This document shows positions 3,182-55,059 of a stretch of DNA of 64,000 nucleotides, one piece after another. Location of the stretch: positions 124,001-188,000 of the forward strand of contig OU015570.1 in the NCBI GenBank assembly GCA_907165135.1. Direction: 5' to 3'. The DNA comes from Oikopleura dioica. Its lineage: Eukaryota > Animalia > Chordata. Each line of letters begins with the position of its first letter. Position 1 is the first letter of the stretch. A model generated the notes under the pieces. The model was given only the letters and a program-made list of their open reading frames with translations, made no database searches and had not been told where the DNA came from. A program made the translations under genes and the position numbers.

Positions 3182-4706
3182 CCGATGAAAGTAAAGCATT
3201 GCCCGGGAAAAATCTCGTTCTCCATATATGGAGAACGAGATTCGGCCACCCCCTGGCGCTGTTGTCCCAGCCAAAAAGTCCTCACCGCTTTCTCACTTTT
3301 GACCAAAGCGATGGCGGAACTAAATAAAAATAATTTCGGTGGTGTTTTGTCTATTTTATGGTGCAAGAAAATAAGAATTTTTACAATAAAAAGGGACCAC
3401 ACACGAATGAATAGACAATTCAGAATAGAAAAAAGGGAGGACAGAGGGCATTGAGCTCGCGCCGATCGCGCACGAAGCAAGAGCATTCTCCACTCAACCA
3501 GACTGGTTTACCCCAAAGTTAAACTTATAGGGGTATATTGAAACTTTTCTAAAGAAAATTTCAATAAAAATGTTTTAAAAAATTTTTTTAATTTTGTTGG
3601 GAGAGAAGGCCTGACTGAGTACCCTGAAAACCTGACTGAGTGAGAAACCCTGACCTGAGTGAATATCAGGAAAAATTTTTCGAACCCTGACCCTGACCCT
3701 GTTCTCAGGTTGCCGAGCCCAGCCACTTAAAAATTGGACCACAGGGAACAGCCCCGTCCCTTGATTTTTAAATTTAAGGGGCTTGACGGCCCTTCGGGCC
3801 GTTTCAGCCCCGTCCCTTGATTTTTAAATTTAAGGGGCTTGACGGCCCTTCGGGCCGATTCAGCCACGTCCCTTGATTTTTAAATTTAAGGGGCTTGACG
3901 GCCCTTCGGGCCGTTTCAGCCCCGTCCCTTGATATATAAATTTAAGGGGCTTGACGGGCCTTCGGGCCGTTTCAGCCCCGTCCCTTGATTTATAAATTTA
4001 AGGGGCTTGACGGCCCTTCAGGCCCTTTCAGCCCCGTCCCTTGATTTTTAAATTTAAGGGGCTTGACGGCCTTTCGGGCCGTTTCAGCCCCGTCCCTTGA
4101 TTTTTAAGTTTAAGGGCTTGACGGCCCTTCGGGCCGTTTCAGCCCCGTCCCTTGATTATTGAATTTAAGGGGCTTGACAAAGGCTGGGAAAAGGCTGAGT
4201 TGATCATTCTCAGTCCCGTCCCCAACCCCGCCCGCCTCCATCTGATAAGAAAATATATAGTGTCCCTATTTTTAGTTTTTTTATGGTTTTTAATTAATTT
4301 CTTTTAGTTTGTTTACAGTCGTCAGGGGCCTGACTTAGGCTTTATCTTTGGTCAAAATAGTGACTCAAGACCTATTAAAATCAGTTCTTTTTGATTTTAA
4401 AACCTTTTTAATTTCTTTAGAAAGCTCTTTTAAGAAAATGAAAATTTTCGATTTTCTTTTCAAAAAAAAATTTCATTATGAATGTATAAATATGAATATT
4501 TTTAGTTCCCCTTTGATCACGTGAAAAAATCCAAAAATGCGAAAGTTCAGTGTGAGGATGTTCTTTTCTTAAAAGGGAAGTCTTCCAGCTGGCGGGTTCC
4601 TCCGCCGCGGAGGCTCCGCGTGGTCCTCCGCTTAATAAAAGCGAAACACGCACACTTGGTGTCGCTTAATCGGGCTCGAGTCCAGGGCAACCCCTACTTT
4701 CATCGG
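3182..4706 (+). mobile_element. TA-flanked non-autonomous DNA transposon (TIR CCGATGAAAGTA) containing a 56-bp minisatellite
   Basis: CCGATGAAAGTA...TACTTTCATCGG with TA TSD; related copies at 14915-15595, 58665-58955 and 60-113. Confidence 0.85.
3749..4178. repeat. 56-bp tandem minisatellite, about 7.7 units
   Basis: Units start at 3749, 3805, 3861, 3917, 3973, 4029, 4085 and 4140; each has the hairpin ACGGCCC-TTC-GGGCCGT. Confidence 0.95.
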
Positions 4707-4780
4707 TATGTTATTTTGAGTACCATCGAACCATTATTTCGGGGAGCTGTTTTTCGTGGAATAATCCTAGATATGTACCA

Positions 4781-5640
4781 TGTTATAGTATGACTATAAC
4801 GTATATGCATTCTGATAAGCCTACAGAAACTATGCAATTTCAAACCATAGTTACTATGCATAAGAAGTTCATGGTCACCTCGAGAATCTCACTCACTCCT
4901 ACTACTTGGTATCTTTGGAGGGGTTTTCGGAGCTGCTCACGGAAAACCGTCGGAGCTGCCGACGGAAATCCGTAAGAAATTATGGTTTTGGCGGACTATA
5001 TAAACGAAGCAGGCACTTAGAATTGGCATCCGAGTTAGGGGGCGCACTGGTTATGTCGCCGAATGTCGCCGAATGTCGCCGAATGTCGCTGAATGTCGCC
5101 GAATGTCGCCGAATGTCGCCGAATGTCGCCACTTGTTTTCGAAAAATAGGAATTATGAAAAAAATTTTTTGGCTCAAATATTCAAAACAAACTTGTTCTA
5201 GAACCGTAAAAGGCGGGAATAGTAGGAGGCGCGGCAATACAAGTGTGTCCAGCCCGACCAGTGAGTTTCCTACCACAAATTGCGCGGAGCGCTTCCTTGC
5301 CTCGAAATTATGCGAAAACAGTTCTAGAACAAGTTTGTTTTGAAATTTCTTGGTTAAAAACTAGTTTTCTTTGCAAAAATCCTGGTTTTAAAAAATAGGT
5401 GGCGACATTCGGCGACATTCGGCGACATTCGGCGACATTCAGCGACATTCGGCGACATTCGGCGACATTCGGCGACATAACCAGTGTCGACCAGTTAGGG
5501 GTCACCTTCAGAAAGACCTAACTAAGAGATATCTGTACTATGACTGTACAAGCGCTAGTCGCGGAATAAAACAGAGCTTTTTAGCTTTTTATACAAATTG
5601 TAGTGTTTTCTTATTTGAGACGCAAAGTCGCACTACAACA
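4781..5640 (+). repeat. 5' LTR (400 bp plus MITE insertion)
   Basis: Identical by eye to 12080-12479 after removing 5041-5500; TATATAAA at 4997-5004, AATAAA at 5565-5570. Confidence 0.95.
5041..5492. mobile_element. MITE with GG..CC ends, 8-bp TSD and 10-bp (GAATGTCGCC)n subterminal arrays (Merlin-like)
   Basis: TSD AGTTAGGG at 5033-5040 and 5493-5500; the empty site is visible in the 3' LTR. Confidence 0.92.
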
Positions 5641-5642
5641 TT

Positions 5643-5655
5643 TGGTGTCAGAAGT
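5643..5655 (+). promoter_or_regulatory. Primer binding site, tRNA-Leu(CAA) type
   Basis: TGGTGTCAGAAGT 2 bp after the LTR, complementary to the ...ACUUCUGACACCA 3' end of metazoan tRNA-Leu(CAA). Confidence 0.8.
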
Positions 5656-5838
5656 ATAAAGAGACCCAGCCTCAGATTAAAAGACGAGTGGATGAAAACT
5701 CACGCTAACCAGATGCCGCTTTCAAAAATCACTCTGATTTTACGACAGCTGCAACGCGTGCGCTTTACCTCGCCTAACTTCCTTTCAGACTTGCATTAAA
5801 AATTCAAACTTGCTATTGTTGCCGCTCAACCGGAAACT

Positions 5839-7461
5839 ATGTCGAAAATCGAAATCAAGAATTCAGTGTGGACTCCATCGCGATCGAAGACAGGTAAAAA
5901 ATGAAAAATAAAGGAAAAAGAGAAATCGAGAAATAATCATCAAGTTAGAATTTTTTTAAAGTATAATTGCCAGGGATTTTCACAGCAAGCGGAGCTCGCA
6001 CCCATAATGGCAGTCACCGATAGAAAATCCTTTAGGCACATAAATTTAAACTTAAAATTTGATTCAAGATAAAATTATAAATAAATAAAAATTAAGAAAT
6101 AATAAATTATTATATTTACGTTAAAGCTGTTTTAAATAAGATAATCAATAAATAAATATAAATAAAATTTTTCATTTGACATATTTTTTCTCAAATAATC
6201 TTCTTCATTGACGAATAGGAATGACGATTGCCGCCTCAGAGCTTTACTGCTTCTATGCTTACGAGCCTAAGGGCTACAAACAAGTGCTTCAAAGATATGT
6301 ATTGCCCAAAATTCAGTACATCGAGGTCGACTTGATATACCGATGAAAGCAGACTCAAATCCGGGGTTACGCCGCCACTGCAAGTCTCGAAATTTGTGAT
6401 TGGCTAGTACCAAAAGATTGTCGCCAGGGGGTGGCGACAATCTTTTTATCCAGGGTAAAGGCCTGCTTTCATCGGTATCTGGACGTCGAAAAATATAAGA
6501 AGATTTTGAGCTCTTTGCTTACATCCAAGAGACTCGCGAAAACGTGAAGCAACATCTGGGAGGCTTCAAATTTAGCGAAAGAGAAGCATGGGCTGTTTAT
6601 GAGTTCTGGAAGACGAAAGAATCGAAAAAAGATAGTCTTTTATTCTGGATCAGCAAGGCAACAACGATGGCAACAATCTGTCGTGGACACCCGGAAATGC
6701 GACAAATAAGCAAGAGTATAAATAAATCCTTCGACTTTTGTTTCAATGCGAAAAGGCACATGTGGAGTACCGACAAATTCAACGGTTGCGATCGCGACGT
6801 CGAGAAACATTACACAGAACGCGATCATAAAAATTTTCTAAAAACTGCAATGTCTCTTGCATTGAATTCACGCGATACAGGCGCTGGGGCTCAGACCACT
6901 CAACCGAGTCGACAAGAAAATGAGGAGCAGCAAAACGTTCAGGCATCATTGGTCGTCCAAAGTGTGCAGCGCGATAAGTATGTTCAACTTGCGCTTGAAC
7001 CTATTCCCACACCGCATCAAACTGTAGTTCCGATAGAATCAGCTCAATTCGTGGAAAATGCAGCTCAGGAACCGGCGAATCCAAGGGAAGGTCAAGAGCT
7101 TGATGTTGAGCAACAACCATCACCAACACCCTCGAGGATTGAGTCCGAAAACATGTTTGAAAATATTCTCCAACAATCACAATTCAATCCCAAAAGCGAC
7201 TCTTATAGAGAATCAAATGCTCAAAATCCAACGACTCCAGTTGCAACCGAGCCGCCAGTTCAACCAACGAAAAAAGCAAGACATGCTGGACCGAAATACC
7301 CAATAAATGTTTTCGAGATGATTTCTCCAACAAAAGAAGAAAAAGAATCAGCCCAACCTGAAAAACAGAAGGGAGACGAAATCAACAAAAACATCCCGCG
7401 AAGGGTTGAGGAGCTTAGTGATCACGATATCGACTTCTTTTCTGGATTTCTTACTCATTAA
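5839..7461 (+). CDS. Spliced cargo ORF-A of unknown function, interrupted by a MITE and one frameshift
   Basis: Exon 1 5839-5893 (MSKIEIKNSVWTPSRSKT), GT..AG intron 5894-6218, exon 2 in frame up to the MITE at 6340-6475, then the 6544-7461 ORF; helical N-terminal half and Q/P/E-rich tail. Confidence 0.55.
6340..6475. mobile_element. 136-bp TA-flanked MITE (TIR CCGATGAAAGCAG)
   Basis: CCGATGAAAGCAG/CTGCTTTCATCGG; TA at 6338-39 and 6476-77. Confidence 0.9.
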
Positions 7462-7562
7462 CTGTTAGAAAATTTTCTTCTTCGACTTTCTTCGATTTAC
7501 TGTCACCCATCAAGTACGCTCAATATCTGGGCTTATTTTTTGTTTTAAGACTCGAGATCTAA

Positions 7563-9129
7563 ATGGCGAATCTTATTCGAACCACACATAATGTTGTCAA
7601 AGAATGTAAAGAAGCGAAGATTCTGTTGCTTACTGAGGAAGACATAAGTGGCCCGATTGCAACTGCTGTCAAAAAGCGAATATCGAAGGAAGTTTCTTAC
7701 TGGTCACATTTGAAAATTCCATGGTGGGACAAAAATTCGCGAATAACCACAAGCAATGGGAGAAAATGTTAAAACAAGCAACGGACGTTCTAGAAGATGA
7801 AGACAATCCGGTTGTGTTCGTCGACAGAGACCTCTGTGCTCGCGATCCCAGCCACTTTAAGGCCCTACTGGATGAGATACAAGCAAAATCAAGAACAAAG
7901 AAGCATGAAATAGAAACAGAGGACATACATTCAACATCGGCGTCTCAGACAGCCAATCAAGCGCCCGCAACAACCATTCCTCAGAAAAGAGATACCGAAA
8001 TAGATCTTTTGAGGAGTGAACTGAAAAGACTCCAATTGGAAAACAAGGAAAAAGATGCATTTCTTAATAAAACGAAAATCCGGGCTGCAGCGATAGAAGA
8101 GGAAAGGCAAAAGAACATCGAGCTACTAAACCAATATCAATCACTCCAGCAGTCGATGATAGGAAGTTTTAAAAAGGCCGCAAAATTCATCAGAACGAAA
8201 ATAGATAAGGAGGCTGATAGTAGTTCTGAATCGACAAGGGAAGAAAAATCAAACACCGAGTCTGACTCAGAGTCTGAGCCAAATTCACAGTCTCAGTCTC
8301 GTCCTCAAAAGAAACATAAGGAAGAAAACTCGCGGTATAATCCCTACACGAGACCTCAAAAACAACAGGAATACACAGATCAAAAAGACAAGGGAGTAAC
8401 AAGAAAAATCAATCGAGAGATTAAGAAAAATCAGAAGAATCCCAAGTCAAATTTTACGGAAATCCAGGGAAATTCAACCTCAAAGTCTGGCAATCAAACG
8501 AGAGAATCTCGTTTTGGGAACATCTGTCCCGAAACAAGAGTGCTTTAAGGAATGCGAGAGAAGGTGGCCTCACGGACAGTCAAATGGTGTCACTGTTTAT
8601 GATGACACTTCGACCTGAAGACTACTTTCTCGAAGAACTTCTTGAGAAAGAAGAGCGTCAAGATTTCGAACTATTCCTAGAAACCATTGGAAAGCATCTT
8701 GCTGGAACTTCAAGCAGCATGATGAATGAAATATTGAGGGCAAAACGACGACCACAAGAATCGCTGCTTGCGTTCTTCATCAGACTGTGCACGATATACA
8801 AGGCATCGTCCGGAAAAAATCCAAAATCACAGGAGGCTGCGATGTTTCTGTACCCGGTGATTAGAAACAACGCCACTAGAATACAGAAAACGGAACTGAG
8901 CAGGGACCTCGAGGCTGGTGAATTGGGCAAAGCAGCAATAACTTTTGACCGACTGCGTGCAGCAATTAAGGTGGCTCAAGTCATGGATGATTCAAATTTT
9001 CACAATGAACCAGCGGAGCTCACCTATAACATAGAGGAACGAAACTACTTTGTTCAAGGACATGCACGAAATAATGGGCGAGTGGCGCTGCCAGAGACAA
9101 AAGCAAACGCTTCTCAAACCGAGGGTTAG
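7563..9129 (+). CDS. gag: Gag-like polyprotein with two homopolymer frameshifts
   Basis: ORFs 7563-7772, 7721-8548 and 8584-9129 join at A-runs (about 7735 and 8425); capsid-like VKFYGNPGKFNLKVW and RRPQESLLAFFIRL motifs; position between PBS and 3' LTR. Confidence 0.7.
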
Positions 9130-10078
9130 AACCCTGAGAACAGACGTCAGTCAGGAAGACACTTCGGATCACAATGACATCATTCCTGTGAACTGACGTA
9201 AAACGATTGATCCGACGCCAGAAAATTTGGCGGAGACATTCAACGAGACGCGCATTGATCTTTGAGAAAGCTGCGCTTAAAATTTATTTCGCGAAGAAAA
9301 TCTGGAAGAACATGAGTTCTTGCTCAAATGAAGACGAAACAGAAGGCTTCATACATCTGATCCTGATCTTTGGGATGGGTACTATTGATGGATTTGATGT
9401 TCAATTTCAGTGAGTTCGAAGCGAATTTGACGTCACGTATTAAGGCTTCATGACCCCTGTTCCAAAATATTCCTGGCCAGAATGGGTTCAGGAGTCAAGT
9501 GGGTTAAAATACGCAGCAAGTAACGCTGAACCATTAAATTGATCACTTTAACTCAAAGTCAGACAAATGCACTTGAAAAAAAGAACTTATGAACTCCTGG
9601 AGGGCTTGAAAAAAGTGGAAAAAAGCTCGGATATACAAATATTGGAAAAAATACATGCGAAATATGTATTTCATATCTCCCGTCGAAGATCCTAGACGCC
9701 ACTTCAAAGTTCTACGCTCTGTACAAGCGAATGAACAGGTCTCTCGGTGATGTGGAAGGAAACACGTATACGGTATGATCAATCGGTAGATTAAAGAGTG
9801 AGAAAACTCTGTCTAGGAGGAAAAGGAGCCGTATCAAAAGACGAATTACAAATCGGCAGGAAAACACGCTTGAGGATATAATGCGCACGAAATAGAAGAC
9901 TGAGCAAGCGAGGCCGGACAAAGGGCGAGCGGCTGCCGTTAACGAATTATCTCAAACAAGTCCGGGGCCACAGGGAGACGAGAGCTTCCCGAAAACCCCG
10001 TGCTTATCTTCGATCCAGACGATGAATGAGAAACGACGGGAAAGAGATTTTTTTTTTGCGAAATTCATCAGTGCTTAA

Positions 10079-10420
10079 CCCTGTCTCGAGCATTCAAAAT
10101 TATCCTATCTCGAGCGCGAGCACATGGCCGTGAGCTCGCCCATCTAGAGAAAAAATGTCATTTCTTTCTCTCTCTTGTCTGTGCAAAGGGCATTAATTGC
10201 AAGAAAGCTGGTCTGTAAGACAGTAAATATAACAGTCCTGATCATCGCAAGCCTCATTTCGGTCATTTTGGGGGTGACCCATCCCGATCCGACCGTGAAA
10301 AAGGGTGGTCGGCGCCGACCCTAGCCCTCAGCACAGACAAGAGAGAGAGAGAATGAACAGACATTTTTTTTTTCTCTAGATGGGCGAGCTCATGGCCGTG
10401 TGCTCGCGCTCGAGATAGGG
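10079..10420. mobile_element. piggyBac-like MITE
   Basis: TTAA|CCC...GGG|TTAA; long inverted arms (CTATCTCGAGCGCGAGCAC..); left end doubled. Confidence 0.85.
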
Positions 10421-10899
10421 TTAAGTAACTCCAGAACCGATCTGCAAATTAACGTTTAGAAAGTCATGGAGAATTACAAGTTAAGACTGATGAGACAGCA
10501 TAAATTGAAAAACAAGGAATCAAAAAGCAATTATCGATAATTAGTTAGATTAATCAGGAAACACAAAATGCGAAGAAGATACCTGAATGGAAAAGTTCCA
10601 AGAAGCAGTATCGAAAAGAATCCAAGGAAAGCAACCGATCAAGACATTATGAATAGAATCCACTAAGATACTGATGATTCTCAAGATACTTAACTGCGAC
10701 CTTGAATTCATAGCAAGCGGAAGTCAACGTTTTCAGTGTTTCACGGAAAGGATGATTGAATTGTGGAAACTCTTAAGTTCATCAAAAAACAAGACTACTT
10801 TTATTTTCTACTGGCGAGCGAAAATCAACTTTTCCGGTGTTTCATAAAAATCATTATTGTCGGTGCTACAAATAATATTTGCTCTTCCTCTTTCAGAAA

Positions 10900-11813
10900 A
10901 TGTTCACGACAGCCGAATTGATTCAAACAGTTGAAGAAATGGGAACAAAGATTTTGAGGCATCAAACACAGAAAAGAAGCGAGCCATCGAGATTTACAAA
11001 CAAGCATTGGAGGACAAAGAACACAGATGCAGAAGAAGACGAGTAGAATATGTGGCTGCTGCAACCTTGTTCATAAGCCTCCGGGAAAATAATAAGATAA
11101 TCACCCTCAGAGACTGTTATGATAAATGCAAGGGAATGAACAACCGAACGATCTCGCAGACATATGAATTCTTGAAAAGCAAACTTAGGGAAATTGGAAG
11201 TGGAGAATACCAAGCCCTCAAAGCTTCACATTACATAGACCAACATCTTTGTAAACTTTCAACAAGTATATATCGAACAGCAATGAAGATCGCGAAAGAA
11301 GTGGATGATCCTTCAGTAAAATCTTCACGAAAAGCAAAAGCTGCTGCGTGTATCTTTTACGCATACAAACACTCTGAAGTGCCAAAATCGATGAGCTTGA
11401 TAGCGAAACTAACAGAGTGCCCTCAGTCGACTATTGCAAGAAACATCAAACACATAAAATCGAAGATTTCGATCATACAGCAAGTAGTTCCAAAACAACA
11501 ATCAACAAGAGATGGTCATGAATGCGATCATCAATCATCGAATCAACCGGTTAGAGAAGTCAACAGTTCAACCTCAAATGATATTCCTTTTGTATTCTCA
11601 AATACGCATACGAATCTCCAAAACAGCGATTCAAATCAAACCTATGCCGCCCCAGATTCGATGAAGGATGCCGTTCGAATGTCCGAGAAGACTCTTCTTG
11701 AGCTAAATGTGAGGGAGGGAAGGGTAACGAAAATTCGTTATGTTAAATTTCAGCCCAACACCCAGTATCACCATCTTGGTAAGGATTCTGCTCATCATAT
11801 CCAGAAGTCTTAG
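10900..11813 (+). CDS. TFIIB/Brf-like protein (two cyclin folds, no zinc ribbon); one frameshift near 10950
   Basis: RRVEYVAAATLFISLRENNKIITLRD and RKAKAAACIFYAYKHSEVPKSMSLIAKLTECPQSTIARNIKHI align by eye with TFIIB GR..[23 protein letters not shown] and [43 protein letters not shown]; upstream frame MFTTAELIQTVEEMGTKI supplies helix 1. Confidence 0.85.
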
Positions 11814-12071
11814 GCATGCCGAACCTACTTCATATCCGCCGGCAATTGGGAAGAAAAATTTTAGTGTAACCGTCATTTAGCAATTGTTTATTATGTCATG
11901 ACCGAATCTCATCGTTTTGGAGAATAAAAAAACCGTGAAAATTAACCTCAAAAGCAGTCGAAACATGTTGTATCTGCTTACCGAAATACTTAAGAAACTG
12001 GATCTTACTTATCGAGCATGGAACTTTCAACCTGAATTAACAATTTATCCAAAGTGTTAATTGACGAAGTT

Positions 12072-12079
12072 GGGGAAAG
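12072..12079 (+). promoter_or_regulatory. Polypurine tract
   Basis: GGGGAAAG directly before the 3' LTR TGTT. Confidence 0.75.
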
Positions 12080-12479
12080 TGTTATAGTATGACTATAACG
12101 TATATGCATTCTGATAAGCCTACAGAAACTATGCAATTTCAAACCATAGTTACTATGCATAAGAAGTTCATGGTCACCTCGAGAATCTCACTCACTCCTA
12201 CTACTTGGTATCTTTGGAGGGGTTTTCGGAGCTGCTCACGGAAAACCGTCGGAGCTGCCGACGGAAATCCGTAAGAAATTATGGTTTTGGCGGACTATAT
12301 AAACGAAGCAGGCACTTAGAATTGGCATCCGAGTTAGGGGTCACCTTCAGAAAGACCTAACTAAGAGATATCTGTACTATGACTGTACAAGCGCTAGTCG
12401 CGGAATAAAACAGAGCTTTTTAGCTTTTTATACAAATTGTAGTGTTTTCTTATTTGAGACGCAAAGTCGCACTACAACA
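12080..12479 (+). repeat. 3' LTR (400 bp)
   Basis: TGTTATAG...CTACAACA, direct repeat of the 5' LTR. Confidence 0.95.
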
Positions 12480-14890: not shown

Positions 14891-14914
14891 TTATTTTCTC
14901 AGATATCGTCTCTT

Positions 14915-15595
14915 GAAAGTAAAGCATTGCCCGGGAAAAAGATGTCTCTACCCCCTTTGACATCTTTTGGCCACCCCTTGGCGCTGTTGTCTCAGCCAAA
15001 AATGTCCTCAGCGCTTTCCCACTTTTGACCAAAGCAATGGCGGAACTAAATAAATACTATTTTGGTGGTGTTTTGTCTAGTTGATGGTGCAAAAGAATAA
15101 GAATTTTTACAAAAAAACAAAAGGGTAAAAAAAGAAAAAAGGGGTGGAGGGCGCCCAGGTTCACAATTGTGTACCCGGTTCACAATTTATATTTCTTATA
15201 TAGGTTTTTATAATTTTTTAGTTAAGTTTACAGTCGTCGAATTATCTCAGGTGCCTGACTCAGGCTTTTTCTATGGTGAAGACCAATTAAAATCAGTTCT
15301 TTCTGTTTTTAAAATTATTTTTATCTTTTAGAAAGCTTTTGAAAGAAAATGAAAATTTTCGATTTTTTCAAAAAATTTTCATAGCGAATCTATATGAATT
15401 TTTTTGTTCCCCGTCGCTTACGTGAAAAAGAAATAAAAAATGCGAGACTTCAGTGAGAGGATTTTTTCGTAAAAGGGAATTCTTCCAGCTGGCTGGTTCC
15501 TCCGCCGCGGAGGCTCCGCGTGGTCCTCCGCTTAATGAAAAATCGAAACACGCCCGCATGGTTTCGCTTATTCGGGCAACCCCTACTTTCATCGA
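14915..15595 (+). mobile_element. Shorter copy of the 3182-4706 element lacking the minisatellite
   Basis: Shares both ends (GAAAGTAAAGCATTGCCCGGG; CCTACTTTCATCG) and the CCTCCGCCGCGGAGGCTCCGCGTGG block. Confidence 0.8.
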
Positions 15596-16572
15596 TATGT
15601 TTCACATGTCGCAAAGAGTCTTTTAAAAAGACTGTTTTAAACTTGGTTTGACTTTAAAAATTTAAAAAAGTATCGAAATTGGCAGTTTATGGTAGTCACT
15701 TGGCAGTGGCAGTTGCAATTTAAAAAAGCTGGCAGTCGCTTGGCAGTGCGCTATTTTCTTTCAGATTTCGAACTCTGCTTGTCGGTTTTTTCAAAAATAA
15801 ATCTTAATTGGGCGAAACTAAATCGAGAACCTCAAGTGTCTTATTGGCAATAAGTTATTGCGGATAGAAAATGTTTAACGAAATGTAGACAGCCTTCGCG
15901 CTATTGTATATTTCTCTTAACACTAACATCGGCGCCGCTTATCCGATTTTCTGCCCTTTTGCTTCTCTAGCATTTTGTCCATCTAGAATGATTTTTGCGG
16001 TTCAATTATTATTTTCAATGATGAAACGATGAATTTCTAGAAAGAAGGAATAGACCACAATATCAGCAAAATTTCAGGAAAGCTGCAATGAGCGCTTCAC
16101 GAAAATTAAATTCTAGTGTTCACCCGCTTCAGGGTATGTTTTATTGATTGCCATCACATGTTTCCGAGGAGTTATCCTGCCAAGTTTTTCTCATTTTTGA
16201 ATTCTAATATTTTCATTTATCATACTCATCATTGTATCTTCTTCTCGCATCTTCTTTTAATGGCGATTAATTTGATAAAATTTAAATCAGGTTAAATGTT
16301 CGAAATTTTTGATAAAATGACTATTTTCTCAGGCGCGCCAGTTTTGAAATCTAGAAAGAAACAGATTTGCGCGCTACAGACAAATACAGTGGTTTTCCAA
16401 GATAAGAGGACCCGAAATAAGAGGACTTTTGCGAAAGTTTGGCTTATTTTGTTATCTGAAAAATTCGAAAATAAAAGGATTTTATTATTATACAATAAGA
16501 GAATTGTAACGTCAATGTGCATCTTTAAAAAATCGCGGTATTTTACCCATTTTCCCACTAAATATATGGAAT

Positions 16573-18288: not shown

Positions 18289-19080
18289 AACATTTCTGTT
18301 CTAGAAGAATTTACCAAATCATGCCTTAACAGTAGAAGGCGCGAAAAAGATGTGTGGCCTGTCAGATCAAGGAATTTTCTGCCATAAATTGCGCGGAGCG
18401 CTTTCATCTCCCTAAATTTCATCATTTTAAATATTTTCGCGCATTTATCAGCCGAAAACGGTCATTTTAAGTAATCAGGGTAATCACGTTAATTTTCAAG
18501 ATGGGTAGGGGAAATCACTAATAATTTAGCTTTTTCTAGCTTAAAAGGGTGGGAGTAAAATACAGTTTTAGAATCTTACTTACTTACTTTCAGTAACCCT
18601 AACTAACCCTAGCCTATCCCCCTCGGGTAATTTGTTCCGTCATTTTTGCAGGTGCCCCTAACCCTAACCTTTATTTTAGCAAAATTTTAGCAAGATTACG
18701 TTTTTATCATCGGCTTACTTCATTTTTGCGAAATAAAGAATGAACCCAGAGATGATCTTCTGAATATGAGAACAGAAAATAGCTCGAGATTTTTGAGGTG
18801 AAAATTGATAAGGCACACTCATTGAATGCACATACCAGCGCAAATCAGGATGATAATGGAAAAACCTACCGAAATTTTATTGCTCAAAAGACATCAAATT
18901 CTGATTTTTGTTTCGGCTCGTACCGAAATATTTTTCCTAAAAACGGGTCTTATTTGTATAATTCTTTCGGCTGCCTGCCGAAATATTTATCATATTTGAC
19001 CCCTCGAAAGTGATTTATATTTCGGTCGCTTTTACCGAAACATTTTTCCATACTACGCGAGATCACCCCCCACTATCAAT

Positions 19081-19197
19081 TAAAGAGTCATGGGCGGCTC
19101 CGGGCAAGAGTGATCTCCCCTCCGAGAGAGGGATGAGGTGCAGGGCCGTACTCAGCAGCGCCGGGGGTCTATCCGACGCTGCGGCACTTCCCCACAC
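19081..19197. repeat. GC-rich structured dispersed repeat (candidate SINE or ncRNA-derived)
   Basis: Near-identical to 20112-20227; two clear hairpins. Confidence 0.8.
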
Positions 19198-20111: not shown

Positions 20112-20227
20112 TAAAGAGTCATGGGCGGCTCCGGGCAAGAGTGATCTCCCCTCCGAGAGAGGGATGAGGTGCAGGGCCGTACTCAGCAGCGCCGGGGGTC
20201 TATCCGACGCTGCGGCACTTCCCACAC
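20112..20227. repeat. Second full copy of the GC-rich structured repeat
   Basis: Same orientation and near-identical to 19081-19197. Confidence 0.8.
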
Positions 20228-26344: not shown

Positions 26345-27334
26345 CAGGGATGTACATTTTCTAAAATTTTCAACTGCGGTGCGGTGCGAACTGCGATTTT
26401 TTCACGATTTTCTGCGGTGCGAACTGCGAGATTTAAAATTTTCTCTTCGCAGTGCGGCGCAGACTGCGATTTTCTGCGATCTTCGGAAAAAATTGAAAAA
26501 TGCGGTAAATTCTGCGATTTTCTGCGAAACTGCGGAAAATAAGCTGAAACTGCGCTTAATTCTGCGATTTTTTGTGAAAAAATGCGAAATTTTCTGCGAA
26601 ATGCGATCCGAGTGAAAAGAGTGGTCATTATTATGACGGGCAGAGTTGCATTTTTGAAAATTTTTCTAAGCTAAGCAAGAGGGCCGTCTCAGCCCCGTTC
26701 CATGATTTTTAAGTTTAAGGGGCTTGACGGCCCTTCGGGCCGTCTCAGCCCCGTTCCATGATTTTTAAGTTTAAGGGGCTTGACGGCCCTTCGTTCCATG
26801 ATTTTTAAGTTTAAGGGCTTGACGGCCCTTCGGGCCGTCTCAGCCCCGTTCCATGATTTTTAAGTTTAAGGGGCTTGACAAAGGCTTTGAACTATGAGTT
26901 GATCAATCTCAGTTCTGTCCCCAACCCCTCCCTCACCCATTATTTAAAAAATTAAAATTATCACTGTTTTTAGCTCAATTATGGTTTTGATTTAAAGTTT
27001 GATCAAGTTGGGCGAACGGCGACTTGGACAAACGGAGACCATTCTTACGACGCCCTATTTTTCGTATATTTCCAGTAACACACAAGAGAAAAACTTGAAA
27101 AAATTGCTGGAAAATGACCGCAAAATCCGCAGTCTGCGAACTGCGAGATTAATCAAAAACTGCGGAAAATGACTGTGGAAAAATCGCAGTTTTCGAAAAT
27201 TCTGCGAAAACTGCGGACTGCGGTGCGATGTGCATACGTGTGCTATGACTGCGCTGCGAAGTGCGAATTTCCGCAGTTCGCAGGTCGCACTGCGAAGGTT
27301 TCTGCGATTTCCCCACTGCGAATGTACATCCCTG
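26345..27334. mobile_element. hAT MITE with CTGCG-rich arms; contains a 56-bp minisatellite variant
   Basis: TIR CAGGGATGTACATT; 8-bp TSD TCTGAGCG. Confidence 0.9.
26681..26880. repeat. About 3.5 units of the 56-bp hairpin minisatellite
   Basis: AGCCCCGTTCCATGATTTTTAAGTTTAAGGGGCTTGACGGCCCTTCGGGCCGTCTC; downstream flank resembles 4178-4230. Confidence 0.85.
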
Positions 27335-41016: not shown

Positions 41017-42945
41017 TCAGCCTGAAATTTTCAGGTTTCTCGGTTTAACTCGGCTTTGACGATAAGGTTCTTTGCAACAGAGCAGGCGTTTTGAGCAGCA
41101 GCCATTTCTTGAGCAGTGAAGGATCGATTTCGTACGAGAAGACGATATTGTCAATTGAAATAGTTGACAACGCAAAGATTGCTTCTTCGACATCGAAAAA
41201 TCTTCTGAAAGTTTCTCGAGGTTAGAGCTTTTTGATCTTGGAAGTCTGCTGGAGAAATCTGCAGAAGCCATTTCTGGGTAGACGCTTGTTATGTCCCCGA
41301 ATGTCCCGAATGTCCCCGAATGTCCCCAATGTCCCGAATGTCCCGTCGGATCATGCAAAAATAGTGCAAAATAAGAAATCAATAACAACTTTTTCGTCTC
41401 TAGAACGTGATTGTTTTGGCATAATGTCAAAAAGAAGGAAGCGCTCCGCGCAATTTGTGGTAGAAAACTCATTGAATTTAGCAAAATAATCGTCTCTAGA
41501 ACAAAATTGTTATGAAAAAATCTTTTTTCCTTAAGAAAAGGTTTTTCTTTTTTTGGCCTTTTTAAAAAAAGTCGGGGACATTGGAGACATTCGGGACATT
41601 CGGGACATTCGGGGACATAACAAGGGCGTTCCCATTTCTGGGCTTGTTCCGCTTTTATGGATGATCGTGAAGTTTAATGCGAGGAGATAGTTGTGAACAT
41701 TGCATAGTTTTATGTCCAACTTTCTTATTCGTGATTCTCGGAACAGGTACAACAAAGATTTATGGTCAACAAAGCAGTCGAATTCACAATTGATCAAGTA
41801 GTACTCGAAAAATTGAATTCCCCAGCAAAGTGCGAGAGCTCTTTGACTCTCATTGGACGCTTAAGATCAGGTCCTGTTAGAGCTTTGCTGGAAACTCCAA
41901 GGGCAGCAAATTGATCGTTTTGAACTTGGTACAGTGTTCCTCCAACTGCATATCCAGAGAAGTCTGTGACGAGAACAACTTTACATCCAGGTTTGAAATG
42001 CGCTTTCAAGTGCCTTCAGATGGTCTTCCAATTTGTTGTCAATGATCACCAAATCATCAAGATAAAGGAAAATTCATCAGCTTATTCATTATTCTTGAGA
42101 AGCAGGCAGGAGCATTGCAAGAACCATAGAGTATTGTATTAGTTTGGTAATGCTGGTTTTCGTATGAAAATGCCATTTTGTGTGCATCTTTTTCGTTAAT
42201 GAGCACTTGCCAATAGCCACGAAAGAAAACAACTGAACTTATGAAATATTCTTTTCCACGGAGATTCTTTACAATTGAGGTTAAAACACTTTGCATACTT
42301 GGTAATGGAAAGCGATCTTTTTGCAATAACTCATTCACCATTCTCGCATCAAGTGAAATTCGAATAGAAGAGTCAGATTTTCGAAGAAGAATCAAAGGAA
42401 TGTTAAATGACGGTTGCGTTTCTTCGATAACATTGAGCTTGTTATCTAATAGCTGGGACAAAATTGATTTTTTGAGGTTGTTCTGATCGTCTTTCCAAGA
42501 AAGCTTTGTAATCTTCTTTCTCACGACCACAATTCTTGTCGATTTCAATAAGGCCAGTTAAAAACAAATCAGATGAGTTCGGATCAATTGTTGGAATTTT
42601 CTTATTGCAAAAGGTGACTGATTTTTCTCCGATCGTTATCCCCTTGAGAGCATCCGTTCCCAAAATGATCGGGCACGATAAATTTTGAACGATGAGCGGA
42701 TCCAACTTCAATCTTAGTGGCGAAGAGCTTGTTTCAAATTTGACGTCCATTGGGGAGCTGAGCGTCTTTACATTGACGACTTCTGAGTTCGCACACTTGA
42801 GCATGATTGTAGATGAAATTTGTTTGTTGATAATTGACGGTAATAGATCTAGAACATCTGAGCGGTAAGATGTTCTACTTGCGCCACTATCGATAAGGCA
42901 GGGAAATTTTTGTCCGTTGAGCATAATCTTTACAAATTTGAGCGA
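41017..42945 (-). pseudogene. pol: Ty3/gypsy pol remnant: protease, RT and RNase H; no integrase seen
   Basis: LIDSGAS (protease); FNIPLILLRKSD..LDARMVN..DRFPLP, GYWQV, YGSCNAPACF and YLDD (RT); VTDFSGYAVGGTL, VDHKSL and ADFSSRLP (RNase H); frameshifts and a MITE insertion. Confidence 0.93.
41277..41632. mobile_element. GG..CC MITE with (GAATGTCCC(C))n arrays inserted in the RNase H region
   Basis: 8-bp TSD CATTTCTG at 41269-76 and 41633-40; reading frame SGTSPEM|ASADFSSRLP is restored on removal. Confidence 0.9.
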
Positions 42946-42967: not shown

Positions 42968-44531
42968 TCACACTTTTAATGACTCTTGATAGTCATGCCT
43001 CCTTTTGATTATTTCCTCAACTTCCTTTGGTACATCTTCCGCATGAAGGTACTTGCACTTTTCGCCAAATCGACATCGGTTATTTTGGACGTATGAAATG
43101 CAGTGTCCCTGGAGCTTGTTGATTGGGATTCTCGATCTTCCCTTCTTCTTCTTTTCCTTTGCTAGTTCCTTCGCAGCAAAGATAATCTCCTTCAGTTGAG
43201 AGCAGCTTTGGGCCATTTCAGATTCCTTCGCATTTGAAGGGCTTTCCGCGACGAAGATATTTTCTCGTTTAAAGAAGCTTCTCTCCTGCTCCATGGCACG
43301 TTGAGCGATATTTCGGAGTGTCAGCAAGGATTTTTCACGTCGGAGAAGTTCTGCAAGTCTCGCCGAGGCTGTCTCGGCTCTTGGCATTCGATAAATCGGT
43401 AACAAATAATTGATTCATCTGCCGCATCAAGATTGAGCTTTCCGTATCCTTTCTTGTAGAAGGCTTGAAGTTTTGTGACTGCCATTTGCTGTGTCTCCTG
43501 AACTCGTTGCAACGATGTATACATGTGCTTGTAGTGTTCCTTGTCTATACCCAGAACTTGAACAAGCTTACCCTTTAAGCTGTTCCAGTTTTGTTTTTCT
43601 TCTTCAGTGATTGGTTCGACGAGAGAAGTTCCACTTTCCTCAATCAGGATTTGGGACAAAGCAACACTGATAAGATCTTCATCGCAAATCTTCGAGCAAT
43701 TTCGGTCAAGAATCGTGGCAAGGTTGTCCATAACAATGATCTCATTTATTTTATCGACATCAATCTTATGGTCAGCTCGAGCAGTCTTTTGGACAGCTTC
43801 CTGGATGTTAGTAACGGGTGGCGGGCGGCTTCGTTCGCAAAGGCCATTTTGCGAACGGCGTTCGCAAATTACGAACGGCGTTCGCAAAATTGAAAAATTT
43901 TTGCCCGAAAATCGCTCACAACTTTTTCAGAATGTGTCCCAGCGGTAGAAAAAGACTGATCCTGCCAAGCCAATGAGTTCTCTACCAGAAAATGCGCGAA
44001 GCGCACACTCACGGCAAAATTTTTCCGTTGCGAACGGCGTTCGCAAGATTACGAACGGCGTTCGCAAATTGCGAACGGCGTTCGCAAAATTGAAAAATTT
44101 TTGCCCGAAAATCGCTCACAACTTTTTCAGAATGTGTCCCAGCGGTAGAAAAAGACTGATCCTGCCAAGCCAATGAGTTCTCTACCAGAAAATGCGCGAA
44201 GCGCACACTCACGGCAAAATTTTTTCCGTTGCGAACGGCGTTCGCAAGATTACGAACGGCGTTCGCAAATTGCGAACGAAGCCGCCCTATACCCGTTAGT
44301 AACATCAAATGCGGGGTGGAACTCAAGGCCTTGGTTTGTCTTTTGAAAAAAATACTTTATGTCCAAATCATCGAACAAGTTTGGCTGAATATTGAGCATA
44401 TTCAGAAAACATCCTGACTTGTCAAATCTTGGGATTGCTAAAGGGTATTCGATTTGGGTTCTTGTCATAAATAAGCATAAGTTTCTTGGCAGTGAGGTCA
44501 ATGACCGTTTTATAGTAAAGCTCGTCCCCAA
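42968..44531 (-). pseudogene. gag: gag of the same element, with a C-terminal CCCH zinc finger
   Basis: Directly upstream of the protease; QRVQETQQMAVTKL capsid-like region; C-x8-C-x5-C-x3-H at 43043-43102; frame FDVTN|IQEAV is restored by removing the 43816-44294 insert. Confidence 0.75.
43816..44294. mobile_element. MULE-like MITE with an internal ~180-bp direct duplication and GCGAACGGCGTTCGC repeats
   Basis: 9-bp TSD GTTAGTAAC at 43807-15 and 44295-303; GGG..CCC ends. Confidence 0.88.
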
Positions 44532-53084: not shown

Positions 53085-55059
53085 CTATAGTCTGACAAAT
53101 TCGTGTTTGATCATGCCAAGCGCTGAGAAGGCGGTAAGGGGTCGGCTTTCCTCGTCCATAACCAGATGCCAGAAGGCGCTTCTGAAGTCAATTGCTGAAA
53201 AGTACTGGCTTCCGTGAAAGTTCTCCAGGCAGTTAAAGAGGCTAGGAATGGGCCACTCGACGTCAACAAGGATTTTGTTGATCATCCTCAGTTCGACGAC
53301 GATTCGCCAGGACCCATCTTTCTTCCACACCAGAGATATCGGCGAGTTATACGGCGAGCCTTTTCTCTTCCGGATAATCACTCTTTGCTCCAGTTCGGTC
53401 GATTCTCCGGCTAGCCATCAACTCCCACTTTGATTTGAGTCGCACCTGCGGTCTTTTGAATTCCTAAATATCCACATCGCTTTTTGAAAATATATCGTCA
53501 AAGTCCTCCATTAAATTGGCGAAACATGTGTTACTTGCATCGTCTAATTCTTTAATATCGATGAGATGCTTGTCTCTTTTCCTCTACTTGAGTTCATTCG
53601 TCCCTTAATTCGTGTTGTTTATTCCAAGTTGAGAATTGATAAAAGTTATATTCTGATAGGAAATAGCTTATCAACTTATGTTTTTTGTTTACGTACCTTT
53701 TGTCAATGCGAGAGTTGAAATCTTGTTAGCTGACAAAACCATGGCCATTGGCTCTGCCTGCAGTTTCCTCGTTCGAGTTCAATAGTAACTGTACATCCGC
53801 TTTCCAACTCGGCCACTGTACTCATTACTCTGTATTTGATCTCGCGATTCTTCCGATCTTTGACGGTGAAATCGACAATCATGTTTTTGTTGGGATCACC
53901 CGGAAGATCTTCCAAGGCCTTGAGTTGGAATTGAGTGATCCCCTCGCATTTCTTTGCGTCAGAAATTTTGAAACATCTGACCGAGTTTCTTGTGATTATT
54001 GTAATAACCACCTTATTGAAGCTGATAAAATCCTGATTTATAATCAGCTCCGTTCCTCTTAGACAATCCAGTCCGAGTATAAGACCAAGTCCGCTTGTTT
54101 TGAGAATTGATATTCGAACATTTTGTAAGATAAGGCCTCGGTCTCGGCCAGGAACGGTGATGTCCAGGATAACGTCAGCCACTATCTCCATGCATTTTCC
54201 GGAAGCTGATCTTGGTGAAGCTCTTGTCGTAGGAGCAATTGTCCATTTGGCGTTGTCTTTGATTATCGATCATGAGCTCTCGGAGATACAGGTTAAAGAC
54301 GCTCCTGTATCCACTAATCCTTCCAGTTGTGCACGTTTTTGTCCCTGACTCAGTATGCACGTAATTGTCAAGAGGCCTAATCCGATTTTTCGATTTTCGA
54401 TGGCTCTGACCTCTTGAGAGCCTCCTACTTTCAGAAAAACGGGCGAAGGGGCTCTTGCTCTTCTCCGTCTCTGCGTCTCCTTTATTGTGCAAAAGAGACC
54501 GTCCCAGATGGGGTCTTCGGTTTCTTCTCAATCGGGGTCTTCGAGGTCGGTCTCGTCTTTCGACCTTTGGTTTTGGGCACTCTCTTGCGAAGTGTCCTTT
54601 TGCGAAGCAGTTGAAACAAGTGTCTCTCGGCTCACGTCGTCGTGGTCTTCCGATTCTGACTGGACCAAAAGACGGTTCATCAATCATATTTGCTGGCGCC
54701 TTTTCTGTAGCTGCTAATGGGGCCGTCACATTAAAAACGACGCTCCCGCCAGTTGGTTCGAAGGTGTCTGTTGTTGGAGCCAGTTGCACTGAGGTTATAA
54801 CTGCGGATTGAACCATTTCGAATGTCAAGTTTGACTCTTCAAGCTTTGATTCAAAAAGCCGCCTTAGCTCAACGCGGTTACTTTCTCCAGCGCTTGCAAT
54901 CAAGCGAGGATACAGCAGTTTAATTTGAGATAAAGATTCCTCATCCGTACTGGCTGCGAGCTGAGACATGAGCCGTATTTTAGCGAGGAATTGAATTTTG
55001 GCACCGGGTACCAATTTGGTACCGGCACCGTCCGTCTCCCTCTCCTCGCGCACGCTCAC
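53085..55059 (-). pseudogene. Ty3/gypsy remnant copy 2 (gag CCHC, protease, RT N-terminal half)
   Basis: Same motifs as 47374-49094; about 250 bp more gag sequence upstream; in-frame TGA after DTG in both copies. Confidence 0.92.

Follow-up and report, generated by a model that had tools for sequence, protein, structure and literature searches.

A TFIIB-core gene without zinc ribbon in a pol-less LTR retroelement from the Y-specific region of Oikopleura dioica

A stretch of 64 kb from the Y-specific region of the tunicate Oikopleura dioica (assembly OKI2018_I69, record OU015570.1), called the window below, contains one recently inserted copy of a long terminal repeat (LTR) retroelement. The window has 100% identity to this assembly, with an exact match recorded for positions 1283-21813. 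The element is pol-less and non-autonomous, and its last gene encodes a protein with the core of the general transcription factor TFIIB. This protein clearly belongs to the TFIIB repeat superfamily, but it is neither a complete TFIIB nor a Brf. Accessory genes of retroelements as such are already known; what seems new here is an LTR retroelement accessory gene of the TFIIB type. The explanation towards which we lean, possible rather than probable, is that the element carries an old, selected TFIIB core that acts as a competitor or modulator of transcription initiation.

The longest single-frame stretch of the gene (10935-11810, 292 codons) was used as the query for profile matches. It matches the Pfam TFIIB repeat PF00382 in two stretches with E 1.5e-9 and 38.2 bits (cut-off 23.6), which is above the gathering score, and also the archaeal TFB model NF001658 (E 5.7e-10). 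The AlphaFold2 model of the protein (pLDDT 73) contains two five-helix cyclin folds, followed by a tail in which the pLDDT lies below 50 from residue 180 on. When the model was compared with the PDB by Foldseek, the top 21 matches were all TFB/TFIIB cores (E 1e-5 to 3e-4), and Brf1 (5e-4 to 3e-3), Brf2 (3.5e-3) and cyclins (5e-3) came at lower ranks. The TM-scores reach only about 0.45, as the two repeats are oriented differently relative to each other. PDB sequence matches obtained with a two-sequence profile were weak (E 0.03-0.18), consisted of TFB/TFIIB cores only and included no Brf; in Pfam, no Brf family matched at E <= 1. The core is basic, with an isoelectric point of 9.7 (plant TFIIB cores: 8.9-9.6). 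A Pfam scan found no recognisable domain or motif in the tail.

A preliminary description of this DNA, made without database searches, had claimed both TFIIB cyclin repeats, the C-terminal helix-turn-helix and an S/Q-rich tail. The Pfam profile, the model and the Foldseek ranking bear out the repeats, the second of which includes the helix-turn-helix, and the composition of the tail is as described (Table 1). Its label “TFIIB/Brf-like” is right in the first half only, since no Brf profile matched and Brf1 and Brf2 rank below TFIIB.

The zinc ribbon, B-reader and B-linker are absent from the protein, and the corresponding statement of the preliminary description on ribbon and reader was correct. 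The zinc-ribbon motif CxxC/H...CxxC/H occurs in none of the plus-strand frames of 5641-12079, and the N-terminal peptide that starts at the ATG has no cysteine, either in the window gene or in P0002, its sole relative (see below). Only about 25 residues lie between the ATG at 10900 and the first core helix; the cellular TFIIBs in the alignment have approximately 110-130 extra N-terminal residues. The great divergence from the host factor that had been noted before was also found in the protein searches. The next-best matches after the relative are plant TFIIBs with 25-29% identity (E ~1e-5), and no Oikopleura TFIIB is among the matches at E <= 1e-3, which supports the view that the gene is far from the host factor.

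The 5' LTR consists of two pieces (4781-5041 and 5493-5640), both of which match the 3' LTR with 100% identity and stand in direct orientation to it. The 5' LTR has a consensus TATA box, TATATAAA, at 4997-5004, and an AATAAA at 5565-5570, beyond the TATA box. Across 5641-12079, the plus strand has more A than T (skew +0.13 to +0.39), which holds equally for the leader, the open reading frames (ORFs), the TFIIB-like gene and the spacers. The skew is about 0 in the flanks, in the LTRs and in both nested miniature inverted-repeat transposable elements (MITEs; +0.01 in the one at 10079-10420). The A-rich bias begins and ends at the LTRs and is of the kind that retroelements usually show; since the TFIIB-like gene carries it, the gene shares the compositional history of the element. 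All sizeable ORFs of the element are on the plus strand.

These properties bear on whether the gene could be an ordinary Y-linked host gene, perhaps testis-specific, that by chance lies between LTRs of separate insertions. Such a gene would be consistent with the lack of a target-site duplication, which was not found around the element (the flanking hexamers differ), and with the public annotation, which has three gene models in the region and presents the ORFs as ordinary genes. However, LTRs of separate insertions would not be expected to be identical and direct, to have a primer-binding-site-like sequence and a polypurine tract immediately inside them, to enclose ORFs on one strand only and to delimit a uniform A-rich bias. 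We therefore regard a host gene as very improbable. Among the described LTR elements of this species, too, some have a target-site duplication and some do not, as marked in the respective paper (PMC4402516). The stop codon of the TFIIB-like gene ends 266 bp ahead of the 3' LTR, so its placement inside the element and close to the polypurine tract was correct. The term “env slot”, which had been used for this position, holds as an analogy only, because there is no pol.

Upstream of the TFIIB-like gene, the element has three large ORFs, which may be separate genes or one interrupted gene. None of them has a Pfam match even at E <= 10, none of the plus-strand ORFs of at least 48 aa upstream of the TFIIB-like gene matches Pfam, and a PDB sequence search with the 5' ORFs gave no match. 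The third ORF resembles gag when inspected by eye. It is 30% identical over 63 aa to the gag ORF, which has a CCHC zinc knuckle, of another, degraded element in the same window, a weak match (pairwise E 0.005) that covers the capsid part of this gag upstream of the knuckle. A protein search with this ORF returned only the ORF itself, an IMG/VR scan returned nothing, and its single-sequence AlphaFold2 model (pLDDT 60) had no capsid match in Foldseek. CCHC knuckle, protease DTG/DSG and reverse transcriptase YxDD motifs are absent from the element interior, and the ORFs leave no room for pol. As protease, reverse transcriptase and integrase are missing and there is no space for them, this copy is non-autonomous. 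In the spacer before the TFIIB-like gene there is no plus-strand ORF of more than 68 aa and no Pfam match; its AT skew (+0.19 to +0.20) is A-rich on the plus strand as in the rest of the element.

Table 1. Features of the LTR retroelement and its TFIIB-like gene (window coordinates)
Feature	Position	Strand	Remarks
5' LTR	4781-5640	+	TG start, CA end; interrupted by foldback element
Foldback/MITE-like insertion, 451 bp	5042-5492	.	inside 5' LTR, absent from 3' LTR
Primer-binding-site-like sequence, TGG...	5643-5656	+	begins 2 nt past 5' LTR; read from sequence
5' coding region	6544-9129	+	3 non-overlapping ORFs (305, 275, 181 aa) in two reading frames; orphans
Third ORF, 181 aa, weakly gag/capsid-like	8584-9129	+	without zinc knuckle
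Non-coding spacer, ~1.8 kb	9130-10899	+	between 5' ORFs and TFIIB-like gene
piggyBac-like MITE, 342 bp	10079-10420	.	within spacer; inverted ends CCC...GGG, duplicated TTAA at each flank
20-nt block identical in L002	10738-10757	+	~140 nt upstream of ATG; candidate regulatory element
Pyrimidine tract ending in AG, acceptor-like	10882-10896	+	3 nt ahead of ATG; also in L002
TFIIB-core-like gene, ATG to stop	10900-11813	+	last gene between the two LTRs
Cyclin repeat 1	10965-11195	+	model helices at residues 11-87; aligned to TFB/TFIIB repeat 1
Cyclin repeat 2 with C-terminal helix-turn-helix	11223-11465	+	helices 97-177; best Pfam stretch 106-175
Polar tail, ~110 aa	11466-11810	+	36% S/T/N/Q; predicted disordered
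Polypurine tract GGGGAAAG	12072-12079	+	abuts 3' LTR; read from sequence
3' LTR, 400 bp, uninterrupted	12080-12479	+	TG...CA

Relatives of the protein were sought with word-indexed searches over 5.8 billion clusters and an exhaustive HMMER search over 1.84 billion representatives. Among approximately 15 billion predicted proteins, only two were found. One, P0001 (161 aa), is the public gene model of the window gene itself and corresponds to the C-terminal part of the TFIIB-like ORF. The other is P0002, an ORF of 108 aa that lies on an ENA metagenome contig of 903 bp (L002). P0002 has 49% identity to the window protein over repeat 1 and begins with the same N-terminal peptide. At the DNA level the two loci are 68% identical, and they have in common the ATG, the acceptor-like site and a perfect 20-mer, which is unique in the window and for which 0.02 chance matches are expected. 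In a comparison of 91 codons in a single frame, identity is 46% at third positions and 64-69% at positions 1 and 2. The uncorrected ratio of nonsynonymous to synonymous differences (pN/pS) is 0.505, with a bootstrap confidence interval of 0.36-0.71, and none of 2000 replicates reached 1; dN is 0.45 and dS, at 1.63, is near saturation. The shared start, the shared acceptor-like site and a pN/pS of 0.5 indicate that the ribbon-less form is old and mostly under purifying selection. Judged from these comparisons, the gene looks like an old, selected component of the element lineage and not like a fresh capture.

The same data have to be weighed against a simpler history, in which a 5'-truncated retro-copy of a TFIIB-family mRNA was captured by the element, has no role and is decaying in a graveyard of transposable elements on the Y. 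A partial cDNA capture predicts a nearly intronless gene without the N-terminal domains, and this is what is seen; one frameshift in the gene, two MITEs nested in the element and the other degraded retroelements of the window also fit decay, as does the lack of any further copy in the protein databases beyond one truncated relative. On the other hand, a relic would not explain a pN/pS of 0.5 with no bootstrap replicate at 1, or a coding-like pattern of codon-position conservation at 50% protein divergence. The shortened N-terminus, the ATG and the acceptor-like site are common to both lineages, so that the short form is old, and the composition of the gene is fully equilibrated with that of the element. 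Moreover, its 292 codons are open in a region where ORFs of at least 200 aa are rare (six in the whole window, three of which are inside this element), and the frameshift may be an assembly error, since the assembly is of Nanopore origin (Canu and Racon, with Illumina polishing; PMC8008620). Taken together, a passenger without a role seems somewhat unlikely to us.

Several points weigh against a selected gene of an element lineage. There is a single visible copy, and otherwise one shortened fragment among all the proteins searched. The selection estimate is based on 91 codons and on a dS near saturation. L002 ends its similarity after repeat 1, with no repeat 2 in the next 416 bp, and the copy on it adjoins a host gene and shows no LTR context: positions 738-902 on the minus strand encode a galactose-binding domain, the C-terminal one of a beta-galactosidase gene (E 5e-18), whose 3' end is convergent with the TFIIB-like relative and lies 250 bp downstream of it. 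The L002 copy may itself be a relic. In the element, pol is absent, gag is unproven and a target-site duplication is missing, and the gene has one frameshift relative to its sole relative. Finally, a ribbon-less competitor would repress the element's own LTR too, and the benefit to the element is not obvious.

Because of the frameshift, 10900-11813 is not the continuous ORF for which the preliminary description took it. The peptide initiated at the ATG at 10900 is in a different frame from the main ORF, and the rest of the gene is without a premature stop. The frameshift may be a real mutation or an error of the Nanopore assembly. Whether the gene is intronless, as had been claimed, is uncertain: the public model P0001 omits an in-frame GT..AG stretch of 45 nt (15 codons) at 11709-11753 in the tail, which may be a real small intron. 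The foldback element in the 5' LTR starts some 37 nt past the TATA box. Each of its inverted ends consists of about eight tandem 10-bp units, and it is flanked by a 9-bp target-site duplication. The arms of the MITE in the spacer are 52 nt long and 96% complementary. With one MITE in the region of the LTR start site, another in the spacer and the frameshift, unless the latter is an assembly error, this copy has probably lost its function as an element.

For the third gene (env) of the Tor elements of O. dioica, two routes of expression are described (PMC4402516): a spliced mRNA, with its donor close to gag and its acceptor ahead of the third gene, and a promoter internal to the spacer. Two conserved features of our gene, the acceptor-like site and the upstream block, are compatible with either route. 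An imperfect direct repeat of about 40 bp, recognised by eye, lies upstream of the ATG (10724-10766 and 10826-10868). Its first copy includes the 20-mer conserved in L002, and the second has an A/T-rich, TATA-like stretch about 50 nt ahead of the ATG. This repeat could mark an internal promoter.

The TFIIB core touches TBP and promoter DNA, and the zinc ribbon docks on RNA polymerase II (Pol II). The ribbon thereby couples TBP-bound promoters to Pol II and is needed for its recruitment, for which the B-core alone is insufficient (PMC12082453). In the explanation that we favour, an initiation competitor or modulator encoded by the element, the gene would be expressed apart from the 5' ORFs: its mRNA would be spliced at the acceptor-like site or would start at a promoter within the spacer. 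By analogy with cellular TFIIB, the basic core would then take the position of the host factor on TBP-TATA promoter complexes. Lacking the ribbon, it would be unable to bring in Pol II by the canonical route, and the protein would compete at, or modulate, initiation at TATA promoters, including the LTR of the element itself. As the LTR has a consensus TATA box, it is a likely target of the protein. The polar tail could serve as a second interaction surface. Damping or retuning of transcription seems to us likelier than activation. The three roles suggested in the preliminary description (LTR-specific initiation factor, dominant negative, integration-targeting adaptor) all remain conjectural.

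The first of them would make the protein a positive initiation factor specific for the element, comparable to a transactivator: its core would sit on the TATA-TBP complex of the LTR, and its tail would recruit Pol II, Mediator or TAFs. The consensus TATATAAA of the LTR would suit such a factor, and the combination of core and C-terminal tail parallels the retroviral cyclin (rv-cyclin), whose activation tail binds TAF9 (PMC3185748). TFIIB paralogues dedicated to transposon transcription are also known, with Emit3 as the example. However, Emit3 requires its zinc ribbon, the B-core alone being insufficient (PMC12082453). The tail of the window protein is without a recognisable domain or motif, and L002, the sole relative, lacks this tail. 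Furthermore, neither of the TFIIB recognition elements BREu and BREd could be fitted by eye to the sequence beside the LTR TATA box. We consider a positive factor unlikely.

An integration adaptor would dock on TBP complexes (Pol II TATA or TFIIIB-like) and tether the pre-integration complex of an autonomous partner to safe sites in the very compact genome of this host. Compact genomes select for the targeting of safe sites, and the integrase of Ty3 targets tRNA genes bound by TFIIIB; the Brf1 chain of a Ty3 cryo-EM structure is among the structural matches of our model (7q5b_Z, E 5e-4). Convergent evolution has led elements of yeast and of amoebae to target sites upstream of tRNA genes (PMC6101501). 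Yet this element encodes no integrase that could be tethered, the protein is nearer to TFIIB than to Brf, and the copy lies in a repeat desert with no target-site duplication. No tRNA gene and no Rfam family was found in a scan of the 64 kb, and hence no tRNA cognate to the primer-binding-site-like sequence. An adaptor function is in our judgement quite unlikely.

The most general form of the proposal is that a larvacean LTR lineage encodes and selectively maintains a ribbon-less TFIIB core, which would be expressed from a subgenomic RNA, take the place of TFIIB on TBP-bound promoters and thereby control transcription of the element or the host or guide integration. As a whole this is doubtful, though possible. 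Env is a known cargo of retroelements, and transactivators or a cyclin are found in complex retroviruses. For a component of the basal machinery such as TFIIB, the only carriers seen so far are large DNA viruses and viruses of archaea. If the proposal is true, this would be the first paralogue of a general transcription factor that is a functional retrotransposon gene, a small RNA-based element could interfere with the assembly of the pre-initiation complex itself, and there would be a natural example of a TFIIB cut down to its core domain. It would also bear on the persistence of elements in an animal genome that is among the most compact. Were the gene a decaying passenger only, it would still document a transcription-factor fragment carried by an LTR element across lineages.

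The surroundings of the element are repeat-rich, as is known for the Y-specific region of O. dioica (PMC8008620). A dispersed repeat family flanks the element in the same orientation on both sides (3186-4712 and 14914-15601, 77-84% identity), from which it follows that the element sits in older repeated DNA. Just upstream of it is a 56-bp satellite (3749-4178, 7.7 copies, 94% matches), to which a short array at 26681-26879, 23 kb away, is related. There are also exact 54-bp repeats (881-934, 19081-19134 and 20112-20165) and a 200-bp tandem repeat (43852-44278, 2.1 copies, 99% matches). Sequences weakly similar to the foldback element at 5042-5492 are present at 41291-41474 and 18328-18403. Remains of other LTR retroelements lie on the minus strand at 42057-42921 and 54175-55056. 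They comprise an RVT_1 reverse transcriptase fragment (E 1.2e-8), the gag ORF with the CCHC zinc knuckle and a sub-threshold aspartyl-protease-like fragment (E 0.005). Except for the weak gag match, they have no similarity to the TFIIB-carrying element. A second copy of this element or of its LTR was not found within the 64 kb.

Searches of metagenomic collections gave a few further observations. Scanning JGI metagenomes with protein patterns and IMG/VR with the TFIIB-like protein yielded nothing; one contig with the conserved 20-mer from the JGI scan had no other similarity and was dismissed as a chance match. A Logan contig (L003, 47% GC) has at 1959-2522 on the plus strand a stop-to-stop ORF of about 187 aa (P0007) with two cyclin-like repeats and no ribbon, whose similarity to the window protein is weak (E 2.8e-4 in the search, pairwise E 9e-6). 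At 3-983 on its minus strand, about 1 kb from the cyclin-like ORF, it has a Ty3/gypsy RNase H-integrase fragment. This could be a second cyclin-fold gene near a retroelement or a coincidence. Pfam did not confirm P0007 as a TFIIB relative and the pol is on the opposite strand; it was left out of the evidence. Another Logan contig encodes an A/T-rich TFIIB homologue of 298 aa (P0006) with a putative zinc ribbon (PF00382, E 2.9e-11), which probably comes from a giant virus or a protist.

In the literature on Oikopleura TFIIB and on TFIIB-like proteins encoded by retrotransposons, no precedent was found, in agreement with the preliminary description, whose author knew of no such gene in a metazoan LTR element. 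In its general architecture, the element resembles the LARD and TR-GAG elements, which have LTRs, a primer-binding site, a polypurine tract, no pol and perhaps a gag-like ORF. Those elements rely on an autonomous partner. We know of no LARD or TR-GAG element that has a conserved extra gene of a cellular transcription-factor type.

The Tor elements (Ty3/gypsy) of the same host likewise have an extra gene just before the 3' LTR, and in Tor4b a spacer precedes this third gene (PMC4402516), as do the 1.8-kb spacer and the conserved acceptor-like site here. However, gag and pol are present in Tor elements, whose third gene encodes a membrane glycoprotein, whereas the present element has no pol, no proven gag and a TFIIB core of nuclear type. 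The Tor groups are defined by Pol phylogeny, and the present element has no Pol to be placed in it.

Giant DNA viruses and archaeal viruses are mobile elements with a TFIIB-family protein of their own, as is the case here, and the top structural matches in a viral library were from Hokovirus, a Saccharolobus rod-shaped virus and Marseillevirus (E 2e-4 to 2e-3). These carriers differ in being large DNA viruses whose transcription apparatus is their own or of archaeal type, and their proteins are usually longer. In Tetrahymena, Emit3 is a divergent TFIIB-family protein that serves transposon-derived transcription as a specialised paralogue (PMC12082453). Emit3 is a host gene product with a required ribbon, whereas the window protein is ribbon-less and encoded in the mobile element.

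By analogy, the closest functional precedent is the rv-cyclin of the walleye epsilonretroviruses. Encoded by orf a of walleye dermal sarcoma virus (WDSV) and walleye epidermal hyperplasia virus (WEHV), it is the product of a retroelement accessory gene, has a double cyclin-box and is less than 20% identical to host proteins; the WDSV protein ends in an effector tail, is made from a spliced subgenomic RNA and targets the Pol II machinery, where rv-cyclin both activates and represses transcription (PMC3185748). The parallel does not imply homology. Protein searches returned no sequence homology with rv-cyclin, and the WEHV-2 homologue matches the model of the TFIIB-like protein with E 2e-3, at the level of the fold only. 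Rv-cyclin is of the cyclin type and binds cdk8 and TAF9, whereas the window protein is of the TFIIB type by profile and structure ranking, and its element is pol-less and resides in a tunicate.

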